A program made the translations under genes and the position numbers. From positions 1-64,000 of the forward strand of contig NIVC01003148.1 of the NCBI GenBank assembly GCA_002269645.1: 64,000 nucleotides of DNA, read 5' to 3'. Positions 5,050 through 52,863 of the stretch are shown piece by piece. How positions within the stretch are numbered: the stretch's first letter is position 1; each line of letters opens with the position of its first letter. Origin of the DNA: Macrostomum lignano (lineage: Eukaryota). The notes below the pieces were generated by a model that was not told where the DNA came from, did no database searches, and saw only the letters and a list, made by a program, of their open reading frames with translations.

Positions 5050-6760
5050 TATTTCAGGCTGGGCTGAATGCGCATATACCAATCTGAACTTCTTGAGCTT
5101 CGAGGCTGGCTCCTCAAACAGACTGAACTCCTCCAGATTGGACAGAGTCTCGTTACCAGAAGCTACCAGGACCTCACCGCCAACTATCGCCCGATCTGCT
5201 TTCTCTCCTGCGTTGCGAAGGTCGCTGAAAAGATGGTCAACGAACGCCTCACCCACTTCCTTGAAGACGGCTGCTTAATCAACCCGGCTCAGGCCGGCTT
5301 CCGCTGGGGTGCCGCTCCACTGAGGAGCAAATCACTGCCGTCACGCAGTACATCTTCGACCGCCTGCAGGCGAAGAAGCCAGCAAAGCGTTCAGCTCTTC
5401 TCCTCGGTGATTTTTCGAGAGCCTACAACCGCGCGTGGCTAAATGCCTAAACCGTCAAACTTCACCGCAAAAGGGTGTCCACCTGCATGAACCGATGGCT
5501 CAGAAGGTTCCTCTCGGACGGACGCGCCCGCGTCATCTGGGACGGAACCAGAAGCCGGATCCTTATCTTCTCCGATGGCCTTCCTTCAGCAAGTCTCGGT
5601 CCTCGCCCCGACCTTGTAGATCGTCTATATCGACGACCTTCTAGATGGCGCGCCTGAGGACGTCCTGACTATAGCATACGCCGACGACGGCACATTGAAG
5701 CTCAGGGAACGACTATCCATGAGTGCGAGCAAACTCTGCAGCGCGCGGCCGATCGGCTCTTGTTGTGGTCCCAAACCTGAAAGGTGGAAGAAACAGAACC
5801 TCAGAAAGAACCAAGTCGGTCGTTGTGTACTTTTCTCTCGACCAGGGTCATCACCGGCTGCTGCCGGTGCGTACCTATCGCGGCACTCCTTCAAGAAGCC
5901 GGGTTCTAATTAACTTCATACCTCGCGTGCTGCGACCGCTGGCGTCACCCTCCTTTACAGGACTCTGAGGCAACGACAGCTTACTCCCCTCCGACGGCTA
6001 GCCGAGCTTAACATCGCTCCGAGACTTCGCGCCCATGACGCCAACGGCGGGTTCCGCCGGGACTGGCACTTCGGCGCCAGGACGCTGATCCGACGCGCCG
6101 GCGTCGAGGATGCGCCTAGAGAGATGGACAACGCGCCGATCCCGCCCTGGCATGCCCCGGACCTCTGCCGCACGACGTCCCGCGAGGACCCGCCGCACAT
6201 CCGTAGAGCCGCCACCTTAGAAACCCTAGCCGCCCTACCGCAGCCATACTTGCGCGGCGGTGCGAGCACAGTCTTGATCGTCCCCAACCATCCACTACAA
6301 CGGCTACAGGCCTCGGCTGGCAGTTGCACCTCGTCCTTCAGAGCCAAGGAGTGCGCCCTCCGGCTGGGCCTACAAGCGGCCCTCGACATCCTGCCATGGC
6401 CGGGCATCGGCGGGCTCCACTCCGCGACAGACTCACAGTCACTGCTCCGAAGCCTCCTCGCTGGCCCACCACCGCGCCTCTCGACATGCTGCAGGGAAAT
6501 CTGGGCTCTGCTCAGGAGAGTCCCGCTGGGCAACGACGTAATCATACAGTGGATCTCCGGACACTGCGACCTGCAGCTCGACGACCTGGTGGACAGCACA
6601 GCGCGCGACACGGCTCGGCTCCCGCTCCACTAAACCTTCGCAGCACCCGTTCGGCCATCGCTATGCTGGTAGCCTCGGACCTCAACCAGGCCTACGCCAA
6701 TGAACAGCACTGCGCGACGCATCGCTCTGCCATACCTGGGAGGCCTACCGCCGGGCTTCG
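5050..6760 (+). pseudogene. Degenerate non-LTR retrotransposon RT + RNase H fragment (I/Ingi-like)
   Basis: NYRPICFLSCVAKVAEKMVNERL...NPAQAGFR, WLRRFLSDGRARV, tacgccgacgac (YADD) at ~5678, RNase H motifs TDSQSLL and IQWISGHCDL; multiple frameshifts. Confidence 0.8.
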
Positions 6761-27593: not shown

Positions 27594-27907
27594 CAGGGGC
27601 GTCGCCATGAATTTTATGGTGGGGGGGACAAAGCTAAGAATTTAATATTACATGTACATGACTAAATTTTGGCACTCCTTTTAGCGCCCCAGGCACTCCT
27701 TTTGGCGCCGCAGACATTCCTTTTAGCGCCACAGGCACTCATTTTGGCGCCGAAGGCAATCATTTTGGCGCCGAAGGTGCTGTTTTGGCGCCCTGAAGAA
27801 AAATTTCTGATTACATCACGACTCACAAGGTGGGGTGGGGGGACAAAGCATTGGCATGTCCCCCAGAGCTTTTACAGGGGGGACGTCCCTCGGTGGCGAC
27901 GCGCCTG
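27594..27907. mobile_element. MITE with CAGGGGCGTCGCCA-type TIRs
   Basis: caggggcgtcgcca ... tggcgacgcgcctg; internal ttttggcgcc repeats and a duplicated ggggggacaaagc. Flanks match only 5/8, so no clean TSD. Confidence 0.65.
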
Positions 27908-30524: not shown

Positions 30525-30835
30525 AAATAGAAAGCATCCCCAAGACAGCAAGCATTCCCCCAGATAGCCAGATAGCAAGCCTCCACGCAGATAGCAAGCC
30601 TCCACGCAGATAGCAATCATCCTCCAAGATAGCAAGCATCCCCCAGATAGCAGCATCCTGCAGATAGCAAGCATCCACCCAGATAGCAAGCATCCTCAAA
30701 GATAGTAAGCATCCCCCCCCCCAGATAGCAAGCATTCTGCAGATAGCAAGCATCCTCAAAGATAGTAAGCATCCCCCCCCCAGATAGCAAGCATTCTGCA
30801 GATAGCAAGCATTCTGCAGATAGCAAGCATTCTTG
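30525..30835. repeat. Degenerate ~11-12-bp minisatellite (gatagcaagcat-based)
   Basis: gatagcaagc recurs more than 12 times with variable C-runs. Confidence 0.8.
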
Positions 30836-30842
30836 GTGCAGT

Positions 30843-31218
30843 AGTGCAGTAATCCTTGGTTTATCAAGTGCAGTAATCCTTGGTTTATCAAGTGCAGTAA
30901 TCCTTGGTTTATCAAGTGCAGTAATCCTTGGTTTATCAAGTGCAATAATCCTTGGTTTATCAAGTGCAGTAACCCTTGGTTTATCAAGTGCAGTAATCCT
31001 TGGTTTATCAAGTGCAGTAATCCTTGGTTTATCAAGTGCAGTAATCCTTGGTTTATCAAGTGCAGTAATCCTTGGTTTATCAAGTGCAGTAATCCTTGGT
31101 TTATCAAGTGCAATAATCCTTGGTTTATCAAGTGCAGTAACCCTTGGTTTATCAAGTGCAGTAATCCTTGGTTTATCAAGTGCAGTAACCCTTGGTTTAT
31201 CAAGTACAGTAATCCTTG
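30843..31218. repeat. 24-bp tandem array (gtgcagtaatccttggtttatcaa), ~15 copies
   Basis: Head-to-tail near-perfect units with no spacers. Confidence 0.95.
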
Positions 31219-32949
31219 TAGATACTTAAATAAAGAAAAATTAAGACACAGAAATAGCCTACTTGGAATAAGATCCAGAAGAAATGAGACTCGGGTGCGA
31301 TTTCTAGGATTGAAGTAGTTCTCATCATATTATAAAACTTCTGGAATACGCTACGAGTAACACTAAGCTACTTCATGGTTCTTCATGAAGTACTTCATGG
31401 TTTGAATCAAGTACATTTGCCACAGGATGGATGGGAAACTCGAACAATCCAGTGTAAATGAACTTCAACAAGTCGTGGCCCTTGTCTTTGCAAGGAGGAA
31501 GGCAGAGGCAAAGTGGTTGACCGTCTCGCAAAATTCATCAAGTTTGGCTCCGTTACTCTTGACGATTGCAGAACAGTTCCTGCAAAGGTCTAAAACGGCC
31601 CACAAGGGAATGTGTGACCAGACTGACTAATTTCTACAAAGCTGCACCTAGACCCAAGAACCCAGGACCATAATGACCATTTCCTATAGCTTCTTCGGTT
31701 GTGCTCAAAGCCGTCTTAAGGGGGTGAAGAGACAGAAGCAGTTAAATCTGAGGGAGATTGTGTAGCGTCTACTGCATTTTAGTGATATTTTCGGTTGCTT
31801 CTGGAACCCATCTTGGTGATTGCGCGCTGCAGTGAATTAAACGTCTTGATAAAATAGTTTCTATCTATGCTAAAATACTACGCTCGTAGAAGTAAACAAT
31901 TCAGAATTGGCAGTAAATCGGGTATAAACTTAATTTACAATGGTAGCAATTGTAGCGAAAAATAGTTGAATACACCAATGCATAAACCACGCTGGTTTTC
32001 ATCCTAAGATACATTTAAGGACAAACAATATTTGATGCATGCTTCAAGTGCTTTTTCTACATGTATAGTCTGACATGTAGCTTACCTTCCTAATTCTGTT
32101 ACATTTCACTGTTACGCTCGAATATGTAAGTAATAAATTTAGTGTGTGTCTGCACTGCATGCAGCTCGTGATTTTTTTTATAAAGTATTTAAAGAACGAA
32201 GAAAGTACTGTTGATTTTATTGTCTATCAGGTTAATTCTTCGGTTGCGTAATTGCTTCAGCTACTTTAAATACTGCTTTTACAACATCAATATTGTTTTG
32301 ATGTGTGCATGATGTAATTTTTCTTGAATTGATTTGCTACCACTGATAGCTGAAACAGAAGGTACGCGTCCAATTGGAGCAATGCTCTCCTTTTTGTGTA
32401 AATATCAATAGATGTTATCTAACTTGGGAAAATACTCTTATATTTTCAAGAGCGGCCTTCCAGATCTAGAGAGGCATTCGCGCAGTTAGGTGATCGCGAT
32501 GATGGCGATAAACAGTTACTCAACAACACCTTTGTCTCTCGTCAGCTAATCAAACGGTAATTTTTATATGCGTCCCCCCAGGTTTTAAGCCTGACAGCTT
32601 TGATTGCAAACGCAGTCCGGGTAGCCCAAGGCAACAGTAAACAGACCGCTGCAGAATGCACTACCCGTTCGGAATATTTTTCGGCACAAGTTTGAGCAAA
32701 TCGCGTTTAGACGAGCCGATCGAAGTGGATCTGCGGGTGGAACACGGATAAGTGGGCAATTGTTTGAGATACTTCAGTGTAGCATTGAGAAACGTTGAGA
32801 CAATAATGATTATTTAAGAGTTAATTTTATGATAGACTTTTATGCTATTTACACGTACATACATGTAGGCCATCATGCATCTGTAGCAGTGGTCGGCAGA
32901 ATATTTTACCTTGATGGCCTGATAGAGAACATAGAGATTGACCGCGGGC

Positions 32950-33325
32950 CGTAGGAGGGAAGAGAAGAGAGGGAATGAAAAAGAGAGAAGGGAGATAAGA
33001 GAAGGGAAAAGCAATAAAATAAAGGAGAAGAGAGGAGTGGAGAGAAGAAGAGAAGAGGAGAGGATGAGAGAAATGAGGGAGAAAAGAGGAGAGGGAAGAC
33101 AGAAGACAAGACGAGAGGAGAGGAGAGGAGAGAGATGAAAGAAAAGAGGAGAGAGGAGATGAAAGAGATGATAGAGAAGAGAAGAGAGGAGATGAGAGGA
33201 GAGAGGAGATGAGAGAGATAATAGAGAAGAGAAGAGAGGAGATGAGAGGAGAGAGGAGATGAGAGAGATAATAGAGAAGAAAAGAGAGGAGAGAAGACAA
33301 GAGAGGAGAGGAGAGAGGAAGAGAG
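32950..33325 (+). repeat. Polypurine (GA-rich) tract with internal short duplications
   Basis: gagaggagatgagaggagagaggagatgagagagataatagagaag is repeated. Confidence 0.85.
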
Positions 33326-34308
33326 TACATTAGAAATAAAAGCGCGGACAAGAGATACATGTATAAACATTGATCGGGCCAGATTGCTATCACTGAAGTT
33401 TCAAAAGACTCGAAATTAAATTCTCCGACTGGCTACAGCTCGTCTCAAAAAAGTTTATTTTTTATGCTTACTATTGCCTACTATATCTGAATGTTATGAA
33501 AGGTAGCTATTCCAAACACGAGTATAATTTCAACATTTGTGTGCGTCGTAGTTTAAACAAAGCTGTCGGCCCTTTGGCGATAATATTAAAGCGGCACAGA
33601 GTTTATTCAAGCATAGGAAATTATAACATAAGTGAGAGGCTGAGAACGAAAGCTTAAGAACGTATAGATGCTGGTTGCTACCATAGACATAACGAGGATA
33701 TGGGTAAAGTGCAACAACGCTAGCTCTAGCTAGCAGCTACTACCACAGTGTGACTCTGAAAAAGTGGCGCTTCAACCTCAACATTTACGAGCAGTTTCTT
33801 TTAGGCAACTCATGAGCTTCAATGATCTGATGGCTCCAGTCGAAATATTGAAATATTATATCCTTCAAAGAGGGTATATGGTGTGTAAGCAAACGAAAGT
33901 CCTTCCCAGCACGTGACAGAAGTATTAAAAGTCGTGTAAGTGTAACACAAAAAGGCGATTCCGAGTATCATGCTATCGTGCATTACCTCAGCTTTTAAGC
34001 CTGCAGGATTTGATTCTTTGAGCGTGCCTAGCAAGATAATATAGGATATCAACTTGAAACTACGATACTTTGCTTGATTGATAGACAGCAAAATTTTATT
34101 GCCTTTCACGTCTTGACATTGCCTTGACACGTCTTTCAGTGTTTTTTCAGGACTGGTTTGCCCAGAGGTCGTTAAAGGAGTCCCTGAGTCAAGAGGTTTA
34201 AAGAGTTTTAACAACAACAAAAAGTAGTTCGCAATTTTTGCGTGGTGCTGTTTACTGGAAATGCCTATATAGGGTTCTATCATTCTATAAGAAAACGGAA
34301 TCTTTAAT

Positions 34309-38178: not shown

Positions 38179-38586
38179 CATATGCGTAGGAACGTTTCAA
38201 AAACTGAGGGCTAGGTTCAGTGGCGGATTTAGGGAGGGGGGACGCACAGGGCGCACACCCCGTCGAGTTAGATTTATTTATTTTTATATAGGAAATGCAC
38301 ATTATCATGTACGTACCGATTATTTTCAGAATCGGTGTCAGCCCTCATTTTGGTGCCGCAGGTACTCATTTTAGCGCCGCAGGCACTCATTTTGGCGCCG
38401 CAGGCACTGTGTTCTGTCGTCCTGCAGAAAAATGCATTCCTGCAAAGCAGCAAAAACCAGAAATAAGAGTAAAACATGAGAAAAAAGTCAAAATTTTGCA
38501 TTTAAACTGTGGAAGGGCCAGTTACCATTGTTGGCAAAGTGTGGGGAGGACGCATGGTCCCACTTTCCCCCATTCCTACGCATATG
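38179..38586. mobile_element. hAT-type MITE
   Basis: TIR catatgcgtagga / tcctacgcatatg; perfect 8-bp TSD ttcgtttg (38171-38178, 38587-38594); internal tttggcgccgcaggcact repeats. Confidence 0.85.
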
Positions 38587-38668
38587 TTCGTTTGACGAAT
38601 GTGCAATGAATAGTAATTTAGTAACTGTAAACGTGCCTTAATTTGGCTTTACGAGAGCTAGTTTGGGT

Positions 38669-38920
38669 GCACGCGAAGGTGTATTCAGCACGCCAGTGAA
38701 GTATGAGACAGACCAGGCCTAAGGGCTACGGTCTGCGATGCTTCACGCCTGCCCCTATATTCAGCAGGTCAAGGCTGGAGAGGGAGGTCTGCACCCGCTA
38801 TTTGCCACTGGCAGCCGCAGACCCCCCCCCCTCACGCTGTTTCACAAGTCGACCCAGGGTACTCGTCCCCGCGTGTGTTCAAGGCAGACCCTAGGGCTGC
38901 TGGACAGACTGGGCTCCGAC
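38669..38920 (+). ncRNA. HDV-like self-cleaving ribozyme at the LINE 5' end, with a ~170-nt structured J1/2 insert
   Basis: P1 GCACGCG (38669-75) / CGCGUGU (38870-76) with G1-U wobble. P2 GUCG-A-CCCA / UGGG-CUC-CGAC. P3 GGG/CCC. L3 UACUCGU. P1.1 AC/GU. P4 GGCAG/CUGCU. J4/2 CAGAC with C38905 in the catalytic position. Confidence 0.85.
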
Positions 38921-39141
38921 GCTGGCGACCCATCCAGTGGCTTCGGCCGAATTTGGGTATGCGGGTCTGGCTTGCCAGCCTGCAGGCCGTGGTACTGCTT
39001 AACGTACCCCCTAATGCCTAAGGTGTTTGACCGTGCCGATGGGCTGGAAGGCCGGGGGGTTGTCCGGTCGCTAGCGGTCCTTTTCTTTTTCTTCTTTCCT
39101 CTTTCTTTTGTGACTCAGCTCACTCCTTCCCGCTTTCAGCT

Positions 39142-40608
39142 ATGGCGTCATCCGCCTCTTTAACCCCCGCTGAAGCCGGGGCCCCGGCAACTCCGGCCGG
39201 TGACTCTGGCACCAGCGCCGCCCCACCGGGGGCAGATGGGCTTGCCGCCGGCTCGGCTGGTGACATGCCCGCACGCGCAACCGGGCCCTCCGCTGAAGCC
39301 CGACGCACCCGCAACCAACGCCGCAACGAGCGGCGACGGCGACTACGGGGTACTGCGGGCCGGCCACCGGCGGAAGGGGAACCTAGGGAGGGCGAGGCTG
39401 CTGTTGGGCCGAAAGGAACCACAGCAACCCCTGCCCCCCAGGATACAACCCCCGCTGGTGAGCCACCCAGTATACCTGCTACAAGCGCGGCCGGGCCTTC
39501 GGGAACCGCCGCCACCAACTACGCCTCAAAGGTCAAGCTCCAACCGGCGGTCATCGTCTTCGGGGAAGAGCAGGACCTCACGGCCGACGAGCTCGACAGT
39601 GCCTGGCGCACCATCGATGCTGCGCTCATCGACCAGCTCCTGGCGGGCCGCCCTGTGAGCGTGGTCAAGTCTGCCAAGACCGACGGCTGCATCTTCATCT
39701 GGTGCAGCTCGGAGGAGAGCAGCCGCAATCTACGCGAGCTTCTGCCAAAGCTGAACTGGCCCAAGAAGCTCGGCAAGCTCGTCTTCGCCAGCGAGGGCGA
39801 ACGACAGAAGACCCAGCGCTTTCGCGTCTGGATCCCGGCCGGCAGTGCCATTAAGTCCGGAGATCAGCTTAGGCAAATATTGCTAAAGCTGCACCCCGAC
39901 CTTAAGGTCAACGGGCTCCTACACCACGCCACTTCCCGCAAGGAGAAGGGGGCTACGGTGATCCTAGGGCTCTCTGATGACTGGGCTAAGCGCTTGCCGC
40001 CTAAGTCCACAATTCATATTGGTCTGACTCAGCTGACCATCCTCCGTTGCGAGGAGCGGAAAGCTGATGAAGCCAAGAATGCCAAAGCTTCCGAAACCGG
40101 AACTGGGGCCCAGGCTCCTCCGGCAAAGAAGCCGAGGCAAACGGCCGATCCTATGCCCGGTAAGGCAGTTCGCGCTGCTGAAACCGGAAATCGCAATCGC
40201 AGACCCGCCAGGAGCACCCGGAGGTCCGGCCTGATCCAGCGCGCGCTGGACCAGGCCAAGAACCTTCGTGCGCATCGTGAGCGGGCCCGCGCTTCTCGCG
40301 CTCCACCCCAACAGCCAGAAGGCCAGACTCTAAGCGGGGAGGCTCCGACCGACTGGTTCGAGTCTGTGACTCACCAGGAGGCTGGCGCCACCCGCATCGA
40401 CCTGACCGACGAGGCAGAGGGGACGGGCAGTGACAGCACCGAAGCACGCAGGAGAGGCGACGGTAACGTCCACGCTGGGCTCACGTCCGCGGAGGACTCC
40501 ACAGCCACCCTAACTGCTGAGGACGCTGAAACTCCCATGGAGGTCTGCGGGTCACCCACCACTGAAAAGGAGGAGGATGACCTGCTCAACGATTCCCCAA
40601 CTGCGTGA
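39142..40608 (+). CDS. LINE ORF1 (488 aa, no CCHC knuckles, LOA-type)
   Basis: Long ORF with ATG directly upstream of ORF2; central YASKVK...WIPAG domain flanked by low-complexity regions. Confidence 0.85.
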   Translation: MASSASLTPAEAGAPATPAGDSGTSAAPPGADGLAAGSAGDMPARATGPSAEARRTRNQRRNERRRRLRGTAGRPPAEGEPREGEAAVGPKGTTATPAPQDTTPAGEPPSIPATSAAGPSGTAATNYASKVKLQPAVIVFGEEQDLTADELDSAWRTIDAALIDQLLAGRPVSVVKSAKTDGCIFIWCSSEESSRNLRELLPKLNWPKKLGKLVFASEGERQKTQRFRVWIPAGSAIKSGDQLRQILLKLHPDLKVNGLLHHATSRKEKGATVILGLSDDWAKRLPPKSTIHIGLTQLTILRCEERKADEAKNAKASETGTGAQAPPAKKPRQTADPMPGKAVRAAETGNRNRRPARSTRRSGLIQRALDQAKNLRAHRERARASRAPPQQPEGQTLSGEAPTDWFESVTHQEAGATRIDLTDEAEGTGSDSTEARRRGDGNVHAGLTSAEDSTATLTAEDAETPMEVCGSPTTEKEEDDLLNDSPTA

Positions 40609-40610
40609 TA

Positions 40611-43600
40611 ATGATCAGCAACCAGGGAATCCATTGCCTGCAGATTAATCTGCAGCACTGCGTCGCAGCCTCGGTCAACCTTATGCGTTACGCCGAGCTC
40701 GACAAGCCGGGGCTCATCCTCGTCCAGGAACCCTGGACTCTCAGAGGTAAGCCTCAAAACGCCCCTGCTGGCTACAATTGTTTTTATACTTACCCTCGCG
40801 AGGCCAACCAGCCTCCCAGAGCTTGCATCTTTGCGAGCAAAACGCTCAGTGCGTGGCTCAGATCGGACCTGTCCAACAGGGACATCTGCGTCATCCAATC
40901 CGAGGACCTTCTTCCTGGGAAGACCACCCTCATTGCCTCGGTTTACCTACCAGGCGATGCTGCGGTCGTCCCCAGAGCCCTCGCTACGCTGGTAGAGCTC
41001 TGCTCTGCCAAAAACTACGAGCTCATGGTTGCCGGCGACATCAACGCCCACCACACTCACTGGGGCAGCACTGGCATTAATCAGAGAGGCGAAGACCTCC
41101 TAGCCTACGTTGCCTCTACGACCCTCGAGTTCTGCAACTCTGGGTCCACCCCTACCTTTGACAACGGACGGTGGTCGGAGGTGATCGACGCTACGCTCGC
41201 AACGCCCAGACTCTACCAGAGTATTGGGGCGTGGCGGGTGCTTCCAGTGTCCTCACTATCGGATCACAAGTTCATCTCCTTCAACCTAATGGCCGCGCGT
41301 AGCGCAACTCGTGTTATGTGGAGACGGAACGCCAGAAATACTGATTGGGAAACCTTCGGGCTCGCCCTGAAGGAATTCCATCGGTCTCCTGGCCAACCAT
41401 TCACGATCACGTCGTGCCGAGAGGCGGATGAGTGCGCGACTGTTTTGACAGAGACGCTAACCGCCGCCTTTGAGGCGTCCTGCCCTTTAAAAGCCTATAA
41501 AGGGAAAAAATCGGCGCCGTGGTGGAATCCCGAGCTCGGCAACCTCCGTCGCAGGGCTAAGAGACTCCACCGCAGAGCAACTAAAACTAAGAGCCCTGCA
41601 GACCAAACCGCCTATCATGAAGCAATTCATGAGTTTAAAAGGCAGGTTAGGAATGCAAAGGCTCAAAAATGGCGACAATACTGTGAGGAGCTAGAGGGCT
41701 CACGCCCCACCTCCAGAGTTGTGAAAGCGCTCACGCTGGACAAAATGTCTAAGCTCTCCTCGGTCAAACGCACCGACGGTACGTCCACGGACAACCCAGG
41801 GGAAACGCTTGATGTAATGCTCACTGCGTTTTTCCCTAACGAGCCAGCTAACCAGACCACTCCGGATCACTCGGAGGGAGGTCACGCGCTGGCTGCATCT
41901 ATCATCACGGAGGACCGCATTGTGAGAGCGGCAAATTCCTTCAAGCCTTTCAAAGCCCCAGGACCCGACGGCATTGTACCGGCCCTTCTAAGAGAGGCGG
42001 TTAAATGCCCAGGCTTCCTGCGCAAACTTTGCAGCCTTCTTCGGGCATGCATCACGCTTGGTTATGTCCCGCAGGCATGGACCGAGGCAAAGGTGATCTT
42101 TATCCCTAAGCCAGGCCGCCCGGACTACCATTCTATCAAATCCTTCAGACCGATCAGCTTGACCTCCTCCCTGGTCAAGCTGATGGAGAGACTGGTGCTT
42201 TGGCGCCTTCTCTCTGTTGAGCTGAAGAACAAACCTCTCAGCGAGAACCAGCACGCTTTTCGGGCGGGTCGCTCCACTGAAAGCGCGCTGCACGTCCTGG
42301 TCGATAAACTCGAGAAGGCCGTGCTTGGTAGTGGCTTTGCTCTGGGGATCTTCCTGGACATCATTGGCGCCTTCGATAACGTCCTCTTTGAGGCGTTCCG
42401 AAGAGCTCTTTGTGAGAGGCTAACGCACTCACATCTCACCAGATGGATCATGTACATGATCAGCCATCGCACGGCCACCGCCAGTCTGCTGGGCTACCAG
42501 AGGACGGTCCCCGTCTGCAAAGGTAGCCCGCAAGGTGGGGTGCTGTCTCCAGTTCTCTGGAATATGGTCATCGATGAGCTCCTCCGGGATGTTCGGCCTG
42601 ACCCCATTCTGAAAGTTGGATATGCGGACGATGTCACCGCGGTGGCATCTGGTCCGTCCCCTGATACCCTCAGGGACCTTCTTCAGAACTTCATCTACGC
42701 TGCTGAGCAATGGGCGGACCGCTGTGGTTTAAGGCTCTCTGAGACTAAGACCGCAGCGATCATGTTCACCAGCAGGACCAAGTGGCAGATTCGGCCGCTC
42801 ACGCTTTACGGAAGGGAAATCCCCTTCTGCAAGCAGACTAAATGTCTGGGTATTACCCTGGACCACAGGCTGAACTGGTCTCCCCACGTTCAAACAAAAG
42901 CCAAAAAGGCCTTCGCAGTCCTCGCGCAATTGCGCAGGGCCGTCGGCACCACCTGGGGGCTCACCCCCAAGCGCCTCTGGTGGATCTACACTGCAATGGT
43001 TAGGCCCGCTATCTCGTATGGCGGCCTGATCTGGGCTAGCGCCCTGCAGATAAAGACCTGTCTAGAGGCTCTCAGGAGAGCGCAAGGGCGCGCTTGTCGC
43101 ACGATCATGAGCGCCCCTCCGTCTGCTCCTTACGATGGCCTCAACGCCTTCCTCAACATTCCTCCGCTGGACATCTTTGTCCGCAGGGAAGCGGCTAAGA
43201 CTGCCCGCCGTCTAGCTGACGCTGGCATTCGAATCCAGCCCCATAGGGCCATGGCTAAGCGCAAGCTTCTGCCCCACGCTGACCTCTGCCTCAAGGACTT
43301 GAGAGACAGCGGCGGGCTCCACGTCCTATCTGACGGCGAACCCCGCACTCTCAACCTCTTTCAGCGCTACAAGGTCACCATCCCCTCTAGGGATGCTGCC
43401 AATGACCACTGGAATTTCCAGGAGGTCCATTGCTACACGGACGGATCCATCAAAGACGGTCGCGCCGGCTTTGGGGTCTGCATCATCATCAACGGCCGCG
43501 TAATTGCCACGCATGCCCAGCACACTGGTAGACTCTCCACAGTCTTCCAGAACGAAGTCCTTGCCATCAGCTCTTGCGCTGCAGAGCTAAACGCCAAGGT

Positions 43601-44314
43601 TACGAGAGGAAAGACTATTGTCATCCACTCCGACAGCCAAGCGGCCTTACAGGCCCTTTGCCACACCACAACGAACTCCCGGACAGTCGCCGACTGCGCC
43701 CGGCAGCTCAACCTCCTGGCCAGAAGCAATACTGTCAGGCTGAAGTGGATCCCAGGGCACGCAGGGTTTCCGGGGAACGAGCTGGCAGACACCCTCGCCA
43801 AGAGGGGCGGCTCTGGCTCTTTTTTCGGCCCTGCCCCCTGGTCCCTATGCCCTTGACAGTCATCAATCGTCAGATCGACGACTGGGCTGACTCCCTCCAC
43901 AGGGACAGATGGGCGGGCACCCAAAACTGCCGGCAATCTCGTGCCGCGGTTCCTTGCCCGTCTCACAGGCTCAGAAACATCCTTCTGAACCAGAATCGGA
44001 AGGATATTCGAGCCCTTGTCATGACCCTTACCGGCCATGGCTACCTCGCCAGGCACTGCTTCCTCCGAGGCGACCTCGAGAGCGAAATTTGCCCCTTTTG
44101 CGAGTGCGACAATGAAGATGCTCAGCACTTTGTCTGTCACTGCCCTTTCTTTAACAGAGACCGGCTACGCTACCTCGGGCCGAACCCGTCCATTGACGAG
44201 GTTTGCCAGCCCGACAGCATCCCACGGCTCATCCAGTTCCTTCGGGCGACTAGACGAGCCAGTTTCTTCCCAACGGAAGATCACGCTGCAGGACGGACCG
44301 GCGGACCACCCTGA
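40611..44314 (+). CDS. LINE ORF2: AP endonuclease, RT, RNase H, C-terminal CCHC; one 1-nt frameshift at ~43834-43838
   Basis: LQINLQH...LVQEPW, GDINAHH, SDH (APE); KAPGPDGI, FRPISL, PQGGVLSPVLW, YADD (RT); YTDGS, SDSQAAL, WIPGHAG..GNE.AD (RNase H). LTGHG...CPFC...HFVCHC lies in the shifted frame. Confidence 0.92.
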
Positions 44315-45396
44315 CCGGCCCCACGCCTCTGCCTGTCTACGGGCCTTCAGGGGCTAGCGGAATGGGCGACCCTCGCCTCCCCGCTGTGTCTACGGACCAC
44401 CCTGCAGCTAAGTTAAGTAAGTTAAAGCTAGTTTGGGTAGACATTGAAAACAATAGCGCAATAAATTTTTGCTTTGGTAATATTTTTATAATTGCATCCC
44501 TGTGCGGGATCATGCGATGAGGAAGTCCCAATGTATAAAATGTTTGATCGACTGTTTTACCTAATACGAGTAATTTACCCAGAAGATTTACCAAATATGG
44601 TGCCCATATTACAAGATTTCGGTTATTGCGTTTCACGCTGGCAATAAAATTGATCTTTGTGTCAATCTATGAAAGAACAGGATTATCGTAACATAGGAAA
44701 AAAGATAAATAGACCACGGGAACGCAAATGATGACAGATCATATCTTTGGCATAAAAACTTGCACAGGAAACTGAGCTAAGTGGCCGTCTAATGGAATGC
44801 CCATGGCCGAAATAAATGAACGAGAAATGACAACTTTCTGCTAATTGTGTCCCAGAGGCATCGCGTTTAGAGATGCAAAACAGACTTACCCGGTATAATA
44901 AATACATGTACCGAAAAGTGTGTAAAATAATGAGCGTTATTAATTCTAACTTGTAAATCACACGAGTGCCCACTTTAATTTAGATCCAGAAACGGTGTAG
45001 GAAAGAGATAATTCTAATCTTTAATCGTACGAGTACTTGTATGTTGTATCGAGTCATCAACGTGATGGTTAGTTGCGGAATACTTCTAAAGACTTTAATT
45101 TCTGTTATAATGCTTACATATCTATACGTTCGTACATGTACATGCACATTTACTACGCCATTCTAAAAAATCTACATGTACGTTCCCCTTTGATGATTCA
45201 ATATACTAAAAACGGCAGTAACAAACTTAAAATTTTTTCCTATGCAGTTCTTTAAAGAAATAACCCACCAACGCAGATAAAACATTTTCCAAGCCAATTT
45301 AACCCTTATTGGGAGAATCAAGCTATTGAAGACTTACCTTTCATTGTCCATGGCCCAAAAAAGGGGCTATGGAGCAACCAATTTGAGAATTTGGGC

Positions 45397-46996: not shown

Positions 46997-47914
46997 CGTG
47001 CAGGATTCTGCTCATCCACTGCATTTTGGGCTGTAGCAAAACTTTCGTCACTGCTCTGCTCGCTAAATTCTTCGTCTGCCATATCTATGTTTGTCTAATG
47101 CAATTTGTTATTTTCTATGGTCTAAGGCTTGCACAACTGTGGAAAGGATGAATTGCGCGTCGAAATTCTCAAACTGTTTGCTCCACAGACCCCCCTTTTT
47201 GGCCATAGACAATGAAAATCAAGTCTTCAATAGCTTGATTTTCCCACTAAGGATTAGTTTGAATTGCTTGTGTTGTGTGGGGTGCTGGGGGTGCTGCGTA
47301 CACTTTACCATCGTGCTCTTTAACTCTCTCCTTCGCTTGTTCTTTTGTGCGTACATGCACGTGACTAATATGTCTATTTTACAGTCCCCAAACGATTGAT
47401 CGGTTAAAATACTATTTCGACAAATACATATATGAATGATTTTATCATGCTATCGCATGAGCATCTTTCTGCCACGCATACTAAGTGAAATCTTTACAGC
47501 TTGCTTCTAGGCTCAATTGGCTTGAGAAATGCTATACTGAGCACTGAAAACTTATCCTTCCAGCTCACGAGCACTTATCTCTGGCCTGTGCTATCATACA
47601 TAACTGTTGCTACATATTGAAATCTCTTAGTTTATTAATTTGCTCTAGAGATACAGACAAGTGCATGAGTACCACCATCGCCATATATTTTTAAAATCAA
47701 CAGCCTTGCTCAATGCTGTACGAGCCACCACCAATAAATAGTATCATTGAAAAAGTCAATGCCGAAACCAATACAAGTCATTACCCGGGAAAAAAAACAT
47801 GCCAAACTTTCCAAGTCCACCATGTACTTGGATGACATTGTTGACTTACCAAGTTTGCAAAGTATCATTGTCATGTACTTAAAAAGTATGCAATGTTTTT
47901 ACCCAACTTCAATC

Positions 47915-48590
47915 GACTTTCCAAGTTTGCAAAGTACACTTCCGATGTCTACATCCAAGTACTTAGAAAGTATCCAAAGTAGAGCCTACTTGGTTCGACT
48001 TTCCAAGTTTGCAAAGTACACTTCCGATGTCTACATTCAAGTACTTGGAAAGTATCCAAAGTAGAGCCTACTTGGTTCGACTTTCCAAGTTTGCAAAGTA
48101 CACTTCCGATGTCTACATCCAAGTACTTAGAAAGTATCCAAAGTAGAGCCTACTTGGTTCGACTTTCCAAGTTTGCAAAGTACACTTCCGATGTCTACAT
48201 CCAAGTACTTAGAAAGTATCCAAAGTAGAGCCTACTTGGTTCGACTTTCCAAGTTTGCAAAGTACACTTCCGATGTCTACATTCAAGTACTTGGAAAGTA
48301 TCCAAAGTAGAGCCTACTTGGTTCGACTTTCCAAGTTTGCAAAGTACACTTCCGATGTCTACATCCAAGTACTTAGAAAGTATCCAAAGTAGAGCCTACT
48401 TGGTTCGACTTTCCAAGTTTGCAAAGTACACTTCCGATGTCTACATCCAAGTACTTAGAAAGTATCCAAAGTAGAGCCTACTTGGTTGACTTTCCAAGTT
48501 TGCAAAGTACACTTCCGATGTCTACATCCAAGTACTTGGAAAGTATCCAAAGTAGAGCCTACTTGGTTGACTTTCCAAGTTTGCAAAATC
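47915..48590. repeat. 82-bp tandem array (~8 copies)
   Basis: gactttccaagtttgcaaagtacac recurs at 47997, 48079, 48161, etc. Confidence 0.95.
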
Positions 48591-50864
48591 CGTACATACA
48601 CCTTTTTTACCAGCAGGATAACAGCTTTTATTTAGCTGACATCGCTCCCACTCACAAAAAATGATTATATGGCTATTCCTCGGAATTTTTGGATTCCTGA
48701 ATACAGCTGAATACAGCTACAGCAATACATCACGAAGGTGTCTGTATTTTTCTTTGGGAAGATTTATGAGCTTGGCTAGCTGCATCATCAAAGCTAGTTT
48801 TCTGTAAAAGGCAAACATTCTTTTGGATTGCATAATTTACATGAAAAGACTCTATAAATACATTTACACAATTGCACATTGCAAGACTTTAATACTTTTA
48901 CTAATCTATTATGATAAAAATTTTAGGAAGTTTTGCTAAAATATCAGTATTTACTGATTCTTGAGTGTTTGTTTCACTAACAAATGAAATGAATATTACA
49001 TCTTATATTGTTTGGGCAAATGATTATTATCTAATTTGTTTAAACTGTCAAAATTCGAAATGAAAATTCTAATTTTCGCTTTCGCATAGGTTTGTGTAAA
49101 ATTGTCCTTTTATCTTTCTTTTCAAAGTTAGGCTTTAGTTAGATAGGCCTTTTAGCAATTATTTGTTGCCGATTTTATTTCATATAGTAGTTGATATACC
49201 TTGTCGCTCAACAATTGGCTGACTATAGTTATTGTAATTGACATTTTATATGGCCCAGTAGGCCAACCTACCCACTATGCCCTATACTGGCTATAGGCAT
49301 AGGCCTGCCTTCTTGGCTTTAACTAGATCTAGAAGTTTTTTAGGGGGCTAATATTATAGTCATATGGGCTTAGTATAATACTGATACTGACTCAGAATAT
49401 AAATATAGATAAAATTTTAAAACTGACTTTTGTGAGTTGTGACTTAAGAATTATTGTCTTGATCTGCATAATGGTTAGTAGGCTTATATTTATAGGAAAA
49501 ATCATCTGGCCTCCCTTATCTAACCTTGACCTTGTTTACAGTTTTGCCTTTTAGCTTCTGTTTTTAATCTTCAGTTTTAGATTTAATGTCATTGTAAAAA
49601 GTGCAAGAAATGCTTCAGAGTAAAAATAGGCCCCCCTACTTTGTTTTTTTACTTTTAGTTTTAGACAGCTGGACTAGAATTATCCAGGCTATGTTATTAA
49701 TTTTGATTGCACATTTTTGACTTTTATTATTGATAATAGATTAATAGTAATCATATTGTTTTATTAAGTCTTAGGATATATGTTGATTAGGCCCTATTGT
49801 AATTATAATCATTCTAATAAATTGTCGTTTGCTTATTAGAAATATAATATAAGCCTAGTCAGTTTTTAATTATAAGCCTAGAAGTATTTAGACTTAAAAT
49901 TTTATTTTTAGTTTATAGAATATTTTTATTTTTAGTAATTTGATGATTTAGATTTTAAGATCAGAAAATTAAGCAATTTATAATAAAAAAATATTTAAGT
50001 ATATTTATGAACTATGTAATGTTGTATTATTGGTCTATTAAGGACAAGGCCTAAATTAAATTTTTATTTAAAAGCAAAGTAATATTTTTGTTTGGAATAT
50101 ATTTAGATTTCAATACTTTCTACATTTTATAATATCTATATCTATACATCTATAGATACATCTATATATACATCTATAAAAATATTTTAAAGACTTATTT
50201 ATTACATTCAAAAAAAGATTGCTATTAGTCTCAAAATAGTAATTATATTATAAAGTGCATTTACTTGGCATTTCTTTAGATTAAGAACTATTACCTGGGT
50301 AAAACTTACATGGTTTAATTTTTTTGTGAAATATCCAATTATTCATATTCACTTAAATTTCCATTTCAGCTACCATCTACAAATGTCATCATCTATATTA
50401 AAAAACCTGCTGAAAACAATAAAGATTTGTTAGCTGTATAATTGTACATTTTTTTACTAATTTTGTTCAAAAAAATTGGCACCTGACTAAGCAATTTATT
50501 TTTTATGCTGCTTTTTCTTTGTCTTGCATTTTTCTGCCTGTGATCATCTGAATAATTTGTTAAGTTGCAACTTTTATGTGCATCAATACTTTGAATACAA
50601 TATAACAGTACACTTAACAATTATTTTGAAGCTCCTATTGCTTGTTGAATTTTTTCTTTAACAAGTGAAATTCTGTATGATGGAATTATTTTTTGTTCTT
50701 TGTAACTTTTGCAAGTCCATGGTATGAGTTATCAACATTTTGCCAAGTGCTCTATAGATAAATTAGATATTTAATACATTCACACTTGGAACCATATACT
50801 TTCTAGTAAATAAGTCACCTAAATCAATTTGAAATGTGATAAGTATTTATAGCTCTTGTGAACA

Positions 50865-51470
50865 TTGCATACTTGGAAAGTACTTGAGAAGTGACTTGAG
50901 AAAACATTGCATACTTGGAAAGTTCTAGAGAAGTGACTTAAGAAAACATAGCATACATGGAAAGTACTAGAGAAGTGACTTAAGAAAACATAGCATACTT
51001 GGAAAGTACTAGAGAAGTGACTTAAGAAAACATAGCATACTTGGAAAGTACTAGAGAAGTGACTTAAGAAAACATAGCATACTTGGAAAGTACTAGAGAA
51101 GTGACTTAAGAAAACATAGCATACTTGGAAAGTACTAGAGAAGTGACTTAAGAAAACATAGCATACTTGGAAAGTACTAGAGAAGTGACTTAAGAAAACA
51201 TAGCATACTTGGAAAGTACTTGAGAAGTGACTGGAGAAAACATAACATATTTGGAAAGTACTTGAGAAGTGACTGGAGAAAACATTGCATACTTGGAAAG
51301 TACTTGAGAAGTGACTGGAGAAAACATTACATACTTGGAAAGTACTTGAGAAGTGACTGGAGAAAACATTGCATACTTGGAAAGTACTTGAGAAGTGACT
51401 GGAGAAAACATTGCATACTTGGAAAGTACTTGAGAAGTGACTGGAGAAAACATTGCATACTTGGAAAGTT
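50865..51470. repeat. 42-bp tandem array (~14 copies, two subtypes)
   Basis: catacttggaaagtact(a/t)gagaagtgact(ta/gg)agaaaacat(a/t)g; the subtype switches at ~51210. Confidence 0.95.
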
Positions 51471-51589
51471 TATTGAGTGTACTTGGAAAACTTAGAAAGT
51501 ACTTAGGCGGTACTTGCCACGAGGTTGCATTGTTGACTTACCAAGTACTTAGCAAGTTTGGTTTGTTTTTTTTTCTCGGGGTTATTCAG

Positions 51590-52863
51590 TTATTCGCACT
51601 TTAACTTCATTACAATCGCCTTAGTCTGAGGCCACTTATTGCCTGTAACAAAAACGGATTGGTATGTAAACGGCGCATTGGTGTTCCTCTTCGTTACCAC
51701 TCCGTTGGGGTTCACTCTTAAGCAGCTGCCAAACCAAAATCCGCCAAAGCCAAACACTCGAGAGCAAGACATTTTTGGATTTGTATCGTGATCCCTGTCG
51801 TAGGTGCTAAATTGCTGCTCATTGTGCACCCTGACGAAACCGTCAATAGTTGAGCCCGCTTTCTTATCGCCCACTCGAAGTCGGTAGTTCTGGTCGGCGC
51901 TCAAGACCTGGAATCGGCCATATTCACCCCAGTACTTCTTCTTGTCCAAACCTTCGGCTTCAATTCTCAGTCGACAAAGTGTAGTCTCGGGATTGCGCCA
52001 AGTAACATCGGTTTCTTTGGTCGCAGTGATGGCGAAAAGACTCTCCAGTCCTGCAGTATGGAAGCATGGTAAGCGATTTTAAAACTGCAGAATCAGCTAG
52101 CCTTGATAAAGCAGCTGTTATAGTCTGAGATTATTCTAAGAGTACACACCGATCCAAAAATTGGACTTTGGATGTCCGAATCCCTTGACGTAGTCGTCCC
52201 AATTTTTCTTGAATGACAAATCGCCATTAACCTGTCGCTGAATGACAAACCATCGGCCTCTGTAGCAGTCCTTGAGATTCAATGGAGTCAAACTTGCTTG
52301 CGCTTCGAACATCACCGCAGAGCTAGCTACCTCTCCGATCAGGTTAAATTGCACTGCCTGCTGAAGAGACCACGGATTGCTCACGAGTTCATCTCGCAGT
52401 CCTGAGCACCTCTGGTAAGTGTCGCATAGGAACAAAAGTTTCCAGCTGCCACGCTTGCTGGTTGTAATCACAGTCAGCTTCGAACTCTTACTCGCGAGTG
52501 CCGCGTTCAACTTGACGTCAACCTGAGAAACGATGACTCGACCAATTTTTTTCCGCGGCCCATGGTACTCTTTAGAACAGGAGTTTTCACTTGAAACGGT
52601 ACAGACAACTGATACTTCAGGTAAAGACGGTTATACCTGAGGGTGCTGCAAGACCCACCGAGCTTGACTCTCGGTTCGGCCACTTGAACGCCTCTTCCCA
52701 ACTCGAATACCCGCAGCTTCAAGCCTTTTATAGTGGTCGTGCCAACGATTTCCTTGAAAGAGTAGCTAGAATGCGGATCATTCTGGCAGCTACACGTCAT
52801 CAGAGTTGGACAACAGCCGATCACGAGCAGAAGTGCTGCAATTACTCTAAGTTTTAATTCCAT
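51590..52863 (-). CDS. Secreted fibrinogen-related domain (FReD) protein, 3 exons (52863-52637, 52589-52150, 52050-51590)
   Basis: Signal peptide MELKLRVIAALLLVIGCC; WFVIQRQVNGDLSFKKNWDDYVKGFG...FWIG|LESL, FSTYDRDHD, C...GGFWFGSC...NPNG. GT-AG introns of 47 nt and 99 nt restore the frame. Confidence 0.85.

Follow-up and report, generated by a model that had tools for sequence, protein, structure and literature searches.

The window analysed here is a 64,000-nt stretch of Macrostomum lignano DNA. On its plus strand, positions 38669–44425 are occupied by a 5.8-kb non-LTR retrotransposon (LINE). The element has the organization of APE-type LINEs, with an ORF2 carrying APE, RT and RNase H domains, an upstream ORF1, a TSD and no LTRs (Table 1). 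ORF2 matches Pfam RVT_1 (6e-31), Exo_endo_phos_2 (1e-19) and RNase_H (3e-14). Further copies of the element were not found in the 64-kb window, nor were Pfam domains in the ORFs flanking it. UniRef entries from Macrostomum lignano reach up to 99% identity to ORF2 segments, and the element family is therefore multi-copy in that flatworm. The only named ORF2 matches are gene models of M. lignano and distant RTs from fungi and insects.

The TSD 13-mer occurs in the window only at 38656–68 and 44426–38, with a chance expectation of 0.10 matches. Since G38669 is the first base 3′ of the TSD, the insertion starts at this nucleotide, in agreement with the initial annotation, which had placed G1 directly after a 13-bp TSD. 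The description of the element as a full-length LINE is partly retained: the insertion spans both ends, but its ORF2 contains a single frameshift near 43829–43853 and is not intact as assembled. In tblastn alignments with the closest full-length relative (P0002), residues 1067–1225 (∼160 residues, to 44314) align in a different frame. The frameshift sits in a C/T-rich stretch; it may be a genuine mutation that inactivates this copy, or an error of assembly at a homopolymer.

Table 1. Features of the LINE and of its predicted 5′-terminal ribozyme in the window
Feature	Position	Strand	Evidence or remark
TSD, 5′ copy, 13 bp, AGCTAGTTTGGGT	38656..38668	+	2 matches in window
P1 5′ strand GCACGCG; predicted cleavage just 5′ of G38669	38669..38675	+	7/7 pairs with 38870–76
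J1/2 peripheral domain, 172 nt	38676..38847	+	MFE folds, covariation
P2 5′ strand GUCG, bulged A, CCCA	38848..38856	+	Pairs with 38910–20; covaries in L001 and L002
P3 GGG/CCC (38857–59 with 38867–69) around L3 UACUCGU (38860–66)	38857..38869	+	
P1 3′ strand CGCGUGU, no gap after P3′	38870..38876	+	
J1/4 GU, 3′ strand of P1.1, partners A38861 and C38862	38877..38878	+	
P4 hairpin	38879..38904	+	Constrained fold
J4/2 CAGAC; C38905 candidate catalytic cytosine	38905..38909	+	
P2 3′ strand UGGG, CUC, CGAC; predicted 3′ end of ribozyme	38910..38920	+	
Rest of 5′ UTR, conserved blocks, polypyrimidine tract 39084–39110 in window copy	38921..39141	+	Alignment
ORF1, 488 aa, weak sub-threshold DUF4780 match	39142..40608	+	
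ORF2, APE endonuclease, RT and RNase H; frame break near 43829–43853	40611..43856	+	
ORF2 C-terminal part, other frame, Cys/His motif, weak zf-RVT match	43829..44314	+	tblastn
3′ UTR and short TAAGT-type tail; terminal CCCTGCAGCTAAGT common to L002	44315..44425	+	
TSD, 3′ copy, 13 bp, AGCTAGTTTGGGT	44426..44438	+	

The two ORFs are nearly contiguous, the ATG of ORF2 at 40611 being located 2 nt past the ORF1 stop. This TGA-TA-ATG arrangement (40606–40613) is a layout compatible with termination–reinitiation. At the other extremity, the motif TAGCGGAATGGGCG and the terminal CCCTGCAGCTAAGT of the 3′ UTR are kept in the window (44340–44425) and in a related element, L002 (5880–5957). The tail of the element is TAAGT-like, not poly(A), and a similar GCTAGCGG is present in the 5′ UTR at ∼39071–39078.

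The 5′ terminus displays the complete strand order of an HDV-like fold, namely P1, J1/2, P2, P3, L3, P3′, P1′, J1/4 (P1.1), P4, J4/2 and P2′, within 38669–38920. This nested double pseudoknot had been proposed in the initial annotation, and each of its parts, in that order, was recovered where it had been placed. P1 comprises 7 bp, with a wobble G1–U38876. In R2 ribozymes, P1′ directly follows P3′, P1 has 6–7 bp and P4 is variable (PMC3774820). P2 is built of two parts (38848–51 with 38917–20 and 38853–56 with 38910–13), and the part adjoining P3 has just 4 bp in the window copy. In L3, a U occupies position 1, the P1.1 strand positions 2–3 and a C–G sequence positions 5–6; the two P1.1 pairs are A38861–U38878 and C38862–G38877. 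In HDV-like ribozymes, a reverse wobble joins the L3 G to an L3 U, and the L3 C and G are conserved in R2 ribozymes (PMC3774820). P4 has a GCAG-(A)-CC core paired with GG-CUGC and two outer pairs, U38879–A38904 and C38880–G38903, across an internal loop. All comparisons with HDV were made via published descriptors and Rfam models only. The distance of 172 nt from P1 to P2 is inside the range known for R2, since P1–P1′ spacing in active R2 ribozymes extends from 23 to >700 nt, the spacing of >700 nt being that of honeybee R2, and cleavage is known for R2 ribozymes of silkmoths whose J1/2 loops measure 216–498 nt (PMC3774820). The first 252 nt of the LINE probably encode a large HDV-like self-cleaving ribozyme.

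Two related elements allow this fold to be followed in other sequences. One, L001, is a JGI metagenome contig with an ORF1 62–66% identical to that of the window element; the other, L002, is a Logan contig with 62% identity in ORF2 and 36% in ORF1. L001 is devoid of a 5′ end and begins ∼90–100 nt inside J1/2. By alignment, L002 starts at the exact homologue of G38669. Its first six bases, GCCUGC, fully pair with GCAGGC after its own P3′. Pairing of P1 and P3 persists, with a 6-bp P1 containing two double changes in L002 and a P3 invariant in the window, L001 and L002. L002 also runs 535 nt beyond the 3′ end of the element into unrelated sequence (5954–6492). Its ends fit an assembly break at a repeat boundary, or else derivation of the contig from an RNA whose 5′ end was processed and whose 3′ end was read through.

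Covariation was counted on a MAFFT alignment (A6) of three sequences (window, L001 and L002). In the pseudoknot helices, 53/55 cells are paired (96.4%), as against 35–49% and 0–1 double-changed pairs in controls with partners slid by 1–3 columns; the observed pairing values were matched in 1/500 column shuffles. Double changes affect seven pairs, of which P2 contributes three and P1 two, with P1.1 changed at both of its pairs. Just two cells lack pairing: in L002 the seventh P1 pair, where the partner C is deleted too, and in L001 a U-U in P1.1, a helix of which L001 keeps 1/2 pairs. The compensatory nature of P1.1, read by the initial annotation from the window copy, extends to L002, the A–U/C–G pairs of the window being replaced by C–G/U–A there. 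In P2, a concerted indel removes 2 bp from both strands in the window as compared with L001 and L002. L3 reads UACUCGU, UUCUCGU and UCUCCGU, with U1, C5 and G6 invariant across the three sequences. P4 occurs at the same place in each element with unrelated sequence and 6–9 bp (8 bp in L001 and 9 bp in L002). A cytosine stands just after P4 in each case (C38905, L001 C143 and L002 C228), which in L002 requires the preferred P4 register with G197 and C228 unpaired. The remainder of J4/2 diverges (CAGAC in the window, CGUG in L001 and CUGC in L002), with the first C common to all and the As after it found in the window only. R2 ribozymes keep a constrained A in J4/2 (PMC3774820). Collectively, the three sequences support the fold, kept through compensatory changes, and its placement at the 5′ terminus of the element.

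Downstream of the predicted ribozyme, the 5′ UTR contains conserved blocks (window 38921–39141, L001 160–520 and L002 245–598). They include a GGC-UUCG-GCC hairpin at ∼38939–38948 and a CCGG...CCGG hairpin at ∼39053–39068. The polypyrimidine tract, 27 nt long and located just before the ORF1 ATG, is specific to the window copy among the three elements.

The match might be a chance resemblance in a GC-rich 5′ UTR, and the frequency of such resemblances was estimated with descriptors. A first, looser descriptor gave dozens of matches in 1.2 kb and was dropped as far too loose. The tight descriptor specified a 7-bp P1 (at most one G-U), a 3-bp Watson–Crick P3, an L3 of 7–8 nt that opens with U and has G as its last base but one, two pairs in P1.1, at least 4 bp in P2, a C within J4/2 and no more than 700 nt of J1/2. 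When unanchored, it retrieved 24 P1/core combinations in 128 kb (both strands of the window), or ∼1 per 5 kb; because of these ∼24 matches, the motif by itself is not significant. The unlikely part is the anchoring on the first base of the element, not the motif itself. Full descriptor matches whose P1 starts at a single given base occur at a frequency of ∼2e-4, and an anchored match appeared in 0/20,000 dinucleotide shuffles of the window 5′ UTR (nt 1–7 kept). The independent anchored match of L002, with its own 6-bp P1, was reached in 18/20,000 shuffles. Against the background of unanchored matches and the silence of the Rfam models described below, this anchoring in two elements, together with seven double compensatory changes as opposed to two broken cells, makes a chance resemblance very improbable.

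The HDV-family models of Rfam gave no match in the whole window at the gathering score, none at E≤10 on a 651-nt region or on a 77-nt core, and none in 20 related loci. Rfam includes a drz-Agam-2 model, and its covariance models cannot encode pseudoknots. Rfam is thus a weak test for this candidate, whose pseudoknot lies outside what the models can represent and whose 172-nt J1/2 insert incurs a heavy penalty.

Homologue searches place the candidate in a restricted group of elements. The exact ORF1 sequence of the window is not on record, and protein searches based on ORF1 gave one match, P0001, and nothing else. Nothing was found by an ORF1 pattern scan of metagenomes, and two scans of viral contigs were without match. 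Scans based on ORF2 yielded ∼100 loci at 22–41% identity, plus L104 and L105. The GGGU...CGUCCC core is absent from all these loci, L104 and L105 included, and descriptor matches upstream of ORF1 in the ORF2-related loci do not rise above the minus-strand background. Relatives devoid of the motif have 30–37% ORF2 identity, and some possess a complete ORF1 and upstream sequence. The ribozyme is accordingly documented for this sub-lineage only, because the more distant relatives are without the motif. Two other contigs, those for P0006 and P0008, proved to be 5′-truncated. A full-text literature search for ribozyme papers on Macrostomum returned nothing relevant. As a side observation, a 5S rRNA gene adjoins a related LINE on a metagenome contig (L057, 184–315, minus strand; Rfam 39.5 bits).

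The long J1/2 is structured. When folded by itself, and also when the core strands are blocked, it closes on itself as a three-way junction, both in the MFE fold of the window and in that of L002. The closing helix, similar to P1.2, pairs 38679–88 with 38837–45 in the window and GCAGGGCGC (11–19) with GCGCUCUGC (156–164) in L002, where it has 9 contiguous bp. Linkers of 2–4 nt separate the closed domain from P1 and P2. In this helix, 16/18 cells are paired and 5/9 pairs are double-changed. Hairpin A inside J1/2 (38696–38746) is conserved as well, with 19 pairs, three of them double-changed. With its closing helix, short linkers and extended P2 (8–10 bp with an internal loop), the candidate has the features of large HDV-like ribozymes of the drz-Agam-2 type. 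In this family of large mosquito ribozymes, J1/2 is likewise closed by P1.2 with short linkers next to an extended P2, and a structured J1/2 domain speeds cleavage nearly 1000-fold through a 'pinch' architecture (PMC4908430). The candidate differs from drz-Agam-2 by its J1/2, which forms a 172-nt three-way junction, by the internal loop in its 8–10-bp P2 and by the missing match in Rfam.

Other pairings compete with this architecture. A nested helix of 38837–49 with 38871–87 (A6 columns 171–183 with 207–223) is the choice of RNAalifold, a program that cannot predict pseudoknots. It has 30/33 paired cells (91%) and four double-changed pairs, as against 0–1 in slid controls, and it competes with P1′, P1.1 (J1/4), the 5′ strand of P4 and the J1/2 closing helix. 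This helix could represent another conformer or have arisen by chance. P1 itself has look-alikes, GCACGC being found again at 38688–93, CACGC at 38833–37 and, in L001, GCUCGC at 76–81, two bases upstream of its P2. The RNA might thus reside mostly in the nested fold, or take its P1 from another such copy, with cleavage then regulated or displaced. This is improbable on several counts. Many nested helices are possible in a GC-rich sequence, of which this one is the best, and internal loops break it. Its 5′ strand is better paired as part of the closing helix, which is contiguous in L002 and richer in double changes. The additional P1-like copies do not fall in homologous columns across the three sequences and are taken as chance occurrences because their positions are not conserved. 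Internal cleavage would also remove sequence plainly kept in full-length copies. A compact ribozyme with a proximal P1 (38833–37, or 76–81 in L001) was rejected for the same lack of positional homology, for a linker that is too short and for a product that would lose the retained 5′ leader; activity is poor in ribozymes whose J1/2 has 2 nt and whose P2 has ∼10 bp (PMC4908430).

Both pairings of the 38837–45 strand show compensatory changes. It is therefore conceivable, if rather unlikely, that the large HDV-like ribozyme is conformationally gated, 38837–45 closing J1/2 in an active state and pairing with P1′, J1/4 and the 5′ strand of P4 in an inactive one. If so, cleavage, or refolding after cleavage into a form suited to translation or protein binding, could be under the control of co-transcriptional folding or of the binding of an element protein to J1/2.

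A different reading accepts the fold and denies the catalysis. The 5′ UTR would then contain a conserved non-cleaving pseudoknot, acting as a protein-binding platform or in an IRES-like manner, and transcription would start at G38669 from an internal promoter. Covariation proves pairing and not catalysis, J4/2 is poorly conserved and Rfam is silent. Precedents exist for both components, since the R2 protein binds a pseudoknot inside its ribozyme region (PMC6765202) and internal promoters are known in some non-LTR elements (PMC3774820, PMC3383444). A purely structural role would leave unexplained why topology, P3′/P1′ adjacency, a 7-nt L3 with U1 and C5–G6, a 2-bp P1.1 and a C after P4 together reproduce the layout of the HDV-like active site. 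As to the promoter, the first bases differ between the elements (GCACGCG versus GCCUGC) yet stay complementary to P1′, and for this reason a helix fits better than a promoter motif. We consider this reading unlikely and retain that of a self-cleaving ribozyme.

From the established chemistry of HDV-like ribozymes, we infer how the predicted ribozyme would operate. The element would be transcribed within a longer host transcript, in which the nested double pseudoknot would form, P1 stacking on P1.1 and P4, and P2 stacking on P3. The closing helix, through its short linkers, would hold the far ends of P1 and of the extended P2 together, as suggested by the fold and by work on drz-Agam-2 (PMC4908430). 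C38905 in J4/2 and a bound Mg2+ may then catalyse attack by the 2′-OH of the base preceding G38669, and cleavage would free an element RNA with a 5′-OH, starting exactly at G38669. P1 uses the element's own first 7 bases, and therefore each full-length copy regenerates the predicted ribozyme. The ribozyme might conceivably also help in translating the uncapped RNA.

R2, baggins, RTE and L1Tc are known to carry ribozymes of this type at their 5′ ends (PMC6765202, PMC3185411), and release of the element RNA in this manner has been proposed for them (PMC3774820, PMC6765202, PMC3185411). The R2 ribozymes of Drosophila, silkmoths and other animals resemble the present candidate by their location at the 5′ end of the element, where they cleave at or near the 5′ junction, by a J1/2 that can be very long and by the small number of invariant positions, which in R2 are few apart from the catalytic C and the C and G of L3 (PMC3774820). 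The host elements are dissimilar. R2 inserts site-specifically into 28S rDNA, where Pol I co-transcribes it, and its single ORF includes a restriction-like endonuclease, whereas the window element has two ORFs, an APE/RT/RNase H protein, a 13-bp TSD and a non-rDNA target. Moreover, P1 lies wholly within the window element, J1/4 and P4 are, as the fold is read here, joined via an internal loop, and J4/2 varies among the three relatives. Like the window element, baggins, RTE and L1Tc are non-site-specific APE LINEs; the HDV-like ribozymes at their 5′ ends have been proposed to release the RNA from read-through transcripts and, possibly, to help its translation (PMC6765202, PMC3185411). L1TcRz of Trypanosoma cruzi departs from the candidate in being compact, confined to the first 77 nt and coincident with an internal promoter; for this group of elements, the phylum of the host differs as well. 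For flatworm LINEs, the ribozyme class met in the literature is a twister variant; the twister-variant ribozymes of Schistosoma mansoni are self-cleaving, belong to non-LTR elements and have a role in retrotransposition (PMC8501958), but they represent an entirely different ribozyme class and fold. According to the same study, no ribozyme had earlier been associated with any of the 17 non-LTR families of S. mansoni (PMC8501958).

The candidate would add an HDV-like ribozyme, missed by Rfam, to a flatworm LINE lineage with RNase H. It would again show that non-site-specific LINEs can set their 5′ ends by self-cleavage instead of a promoter. Its large three-way J1/2 domain offers a natural test case for the 'pinch' model, and the motif allows full-length 5′ ends to be marked precisely when this repeat family is annotated. 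The present understanding of HDV-like ribozymes is left unchanged, the locus being a credible and unsurprising instance of a known strategy.

Repeats also occur elsewhere in the window. A 21-nt tandem unit (GCACTCATTTTGGCGCCGCAG-like) is present at 38320–38427 and 27651–27800, the former ∼250 nt upstream of the LINE insertion. Other tandem arrays (50735–51616, 30771–31290, 47821–48569 and 32976–33329) comprise 42-, 24- and 82-nt units and a purine-rich GA-type array. On the minus strand, near-identical stretches of >100 nt at ∼29512 and ∼50639 suggest a dispersed repeat.
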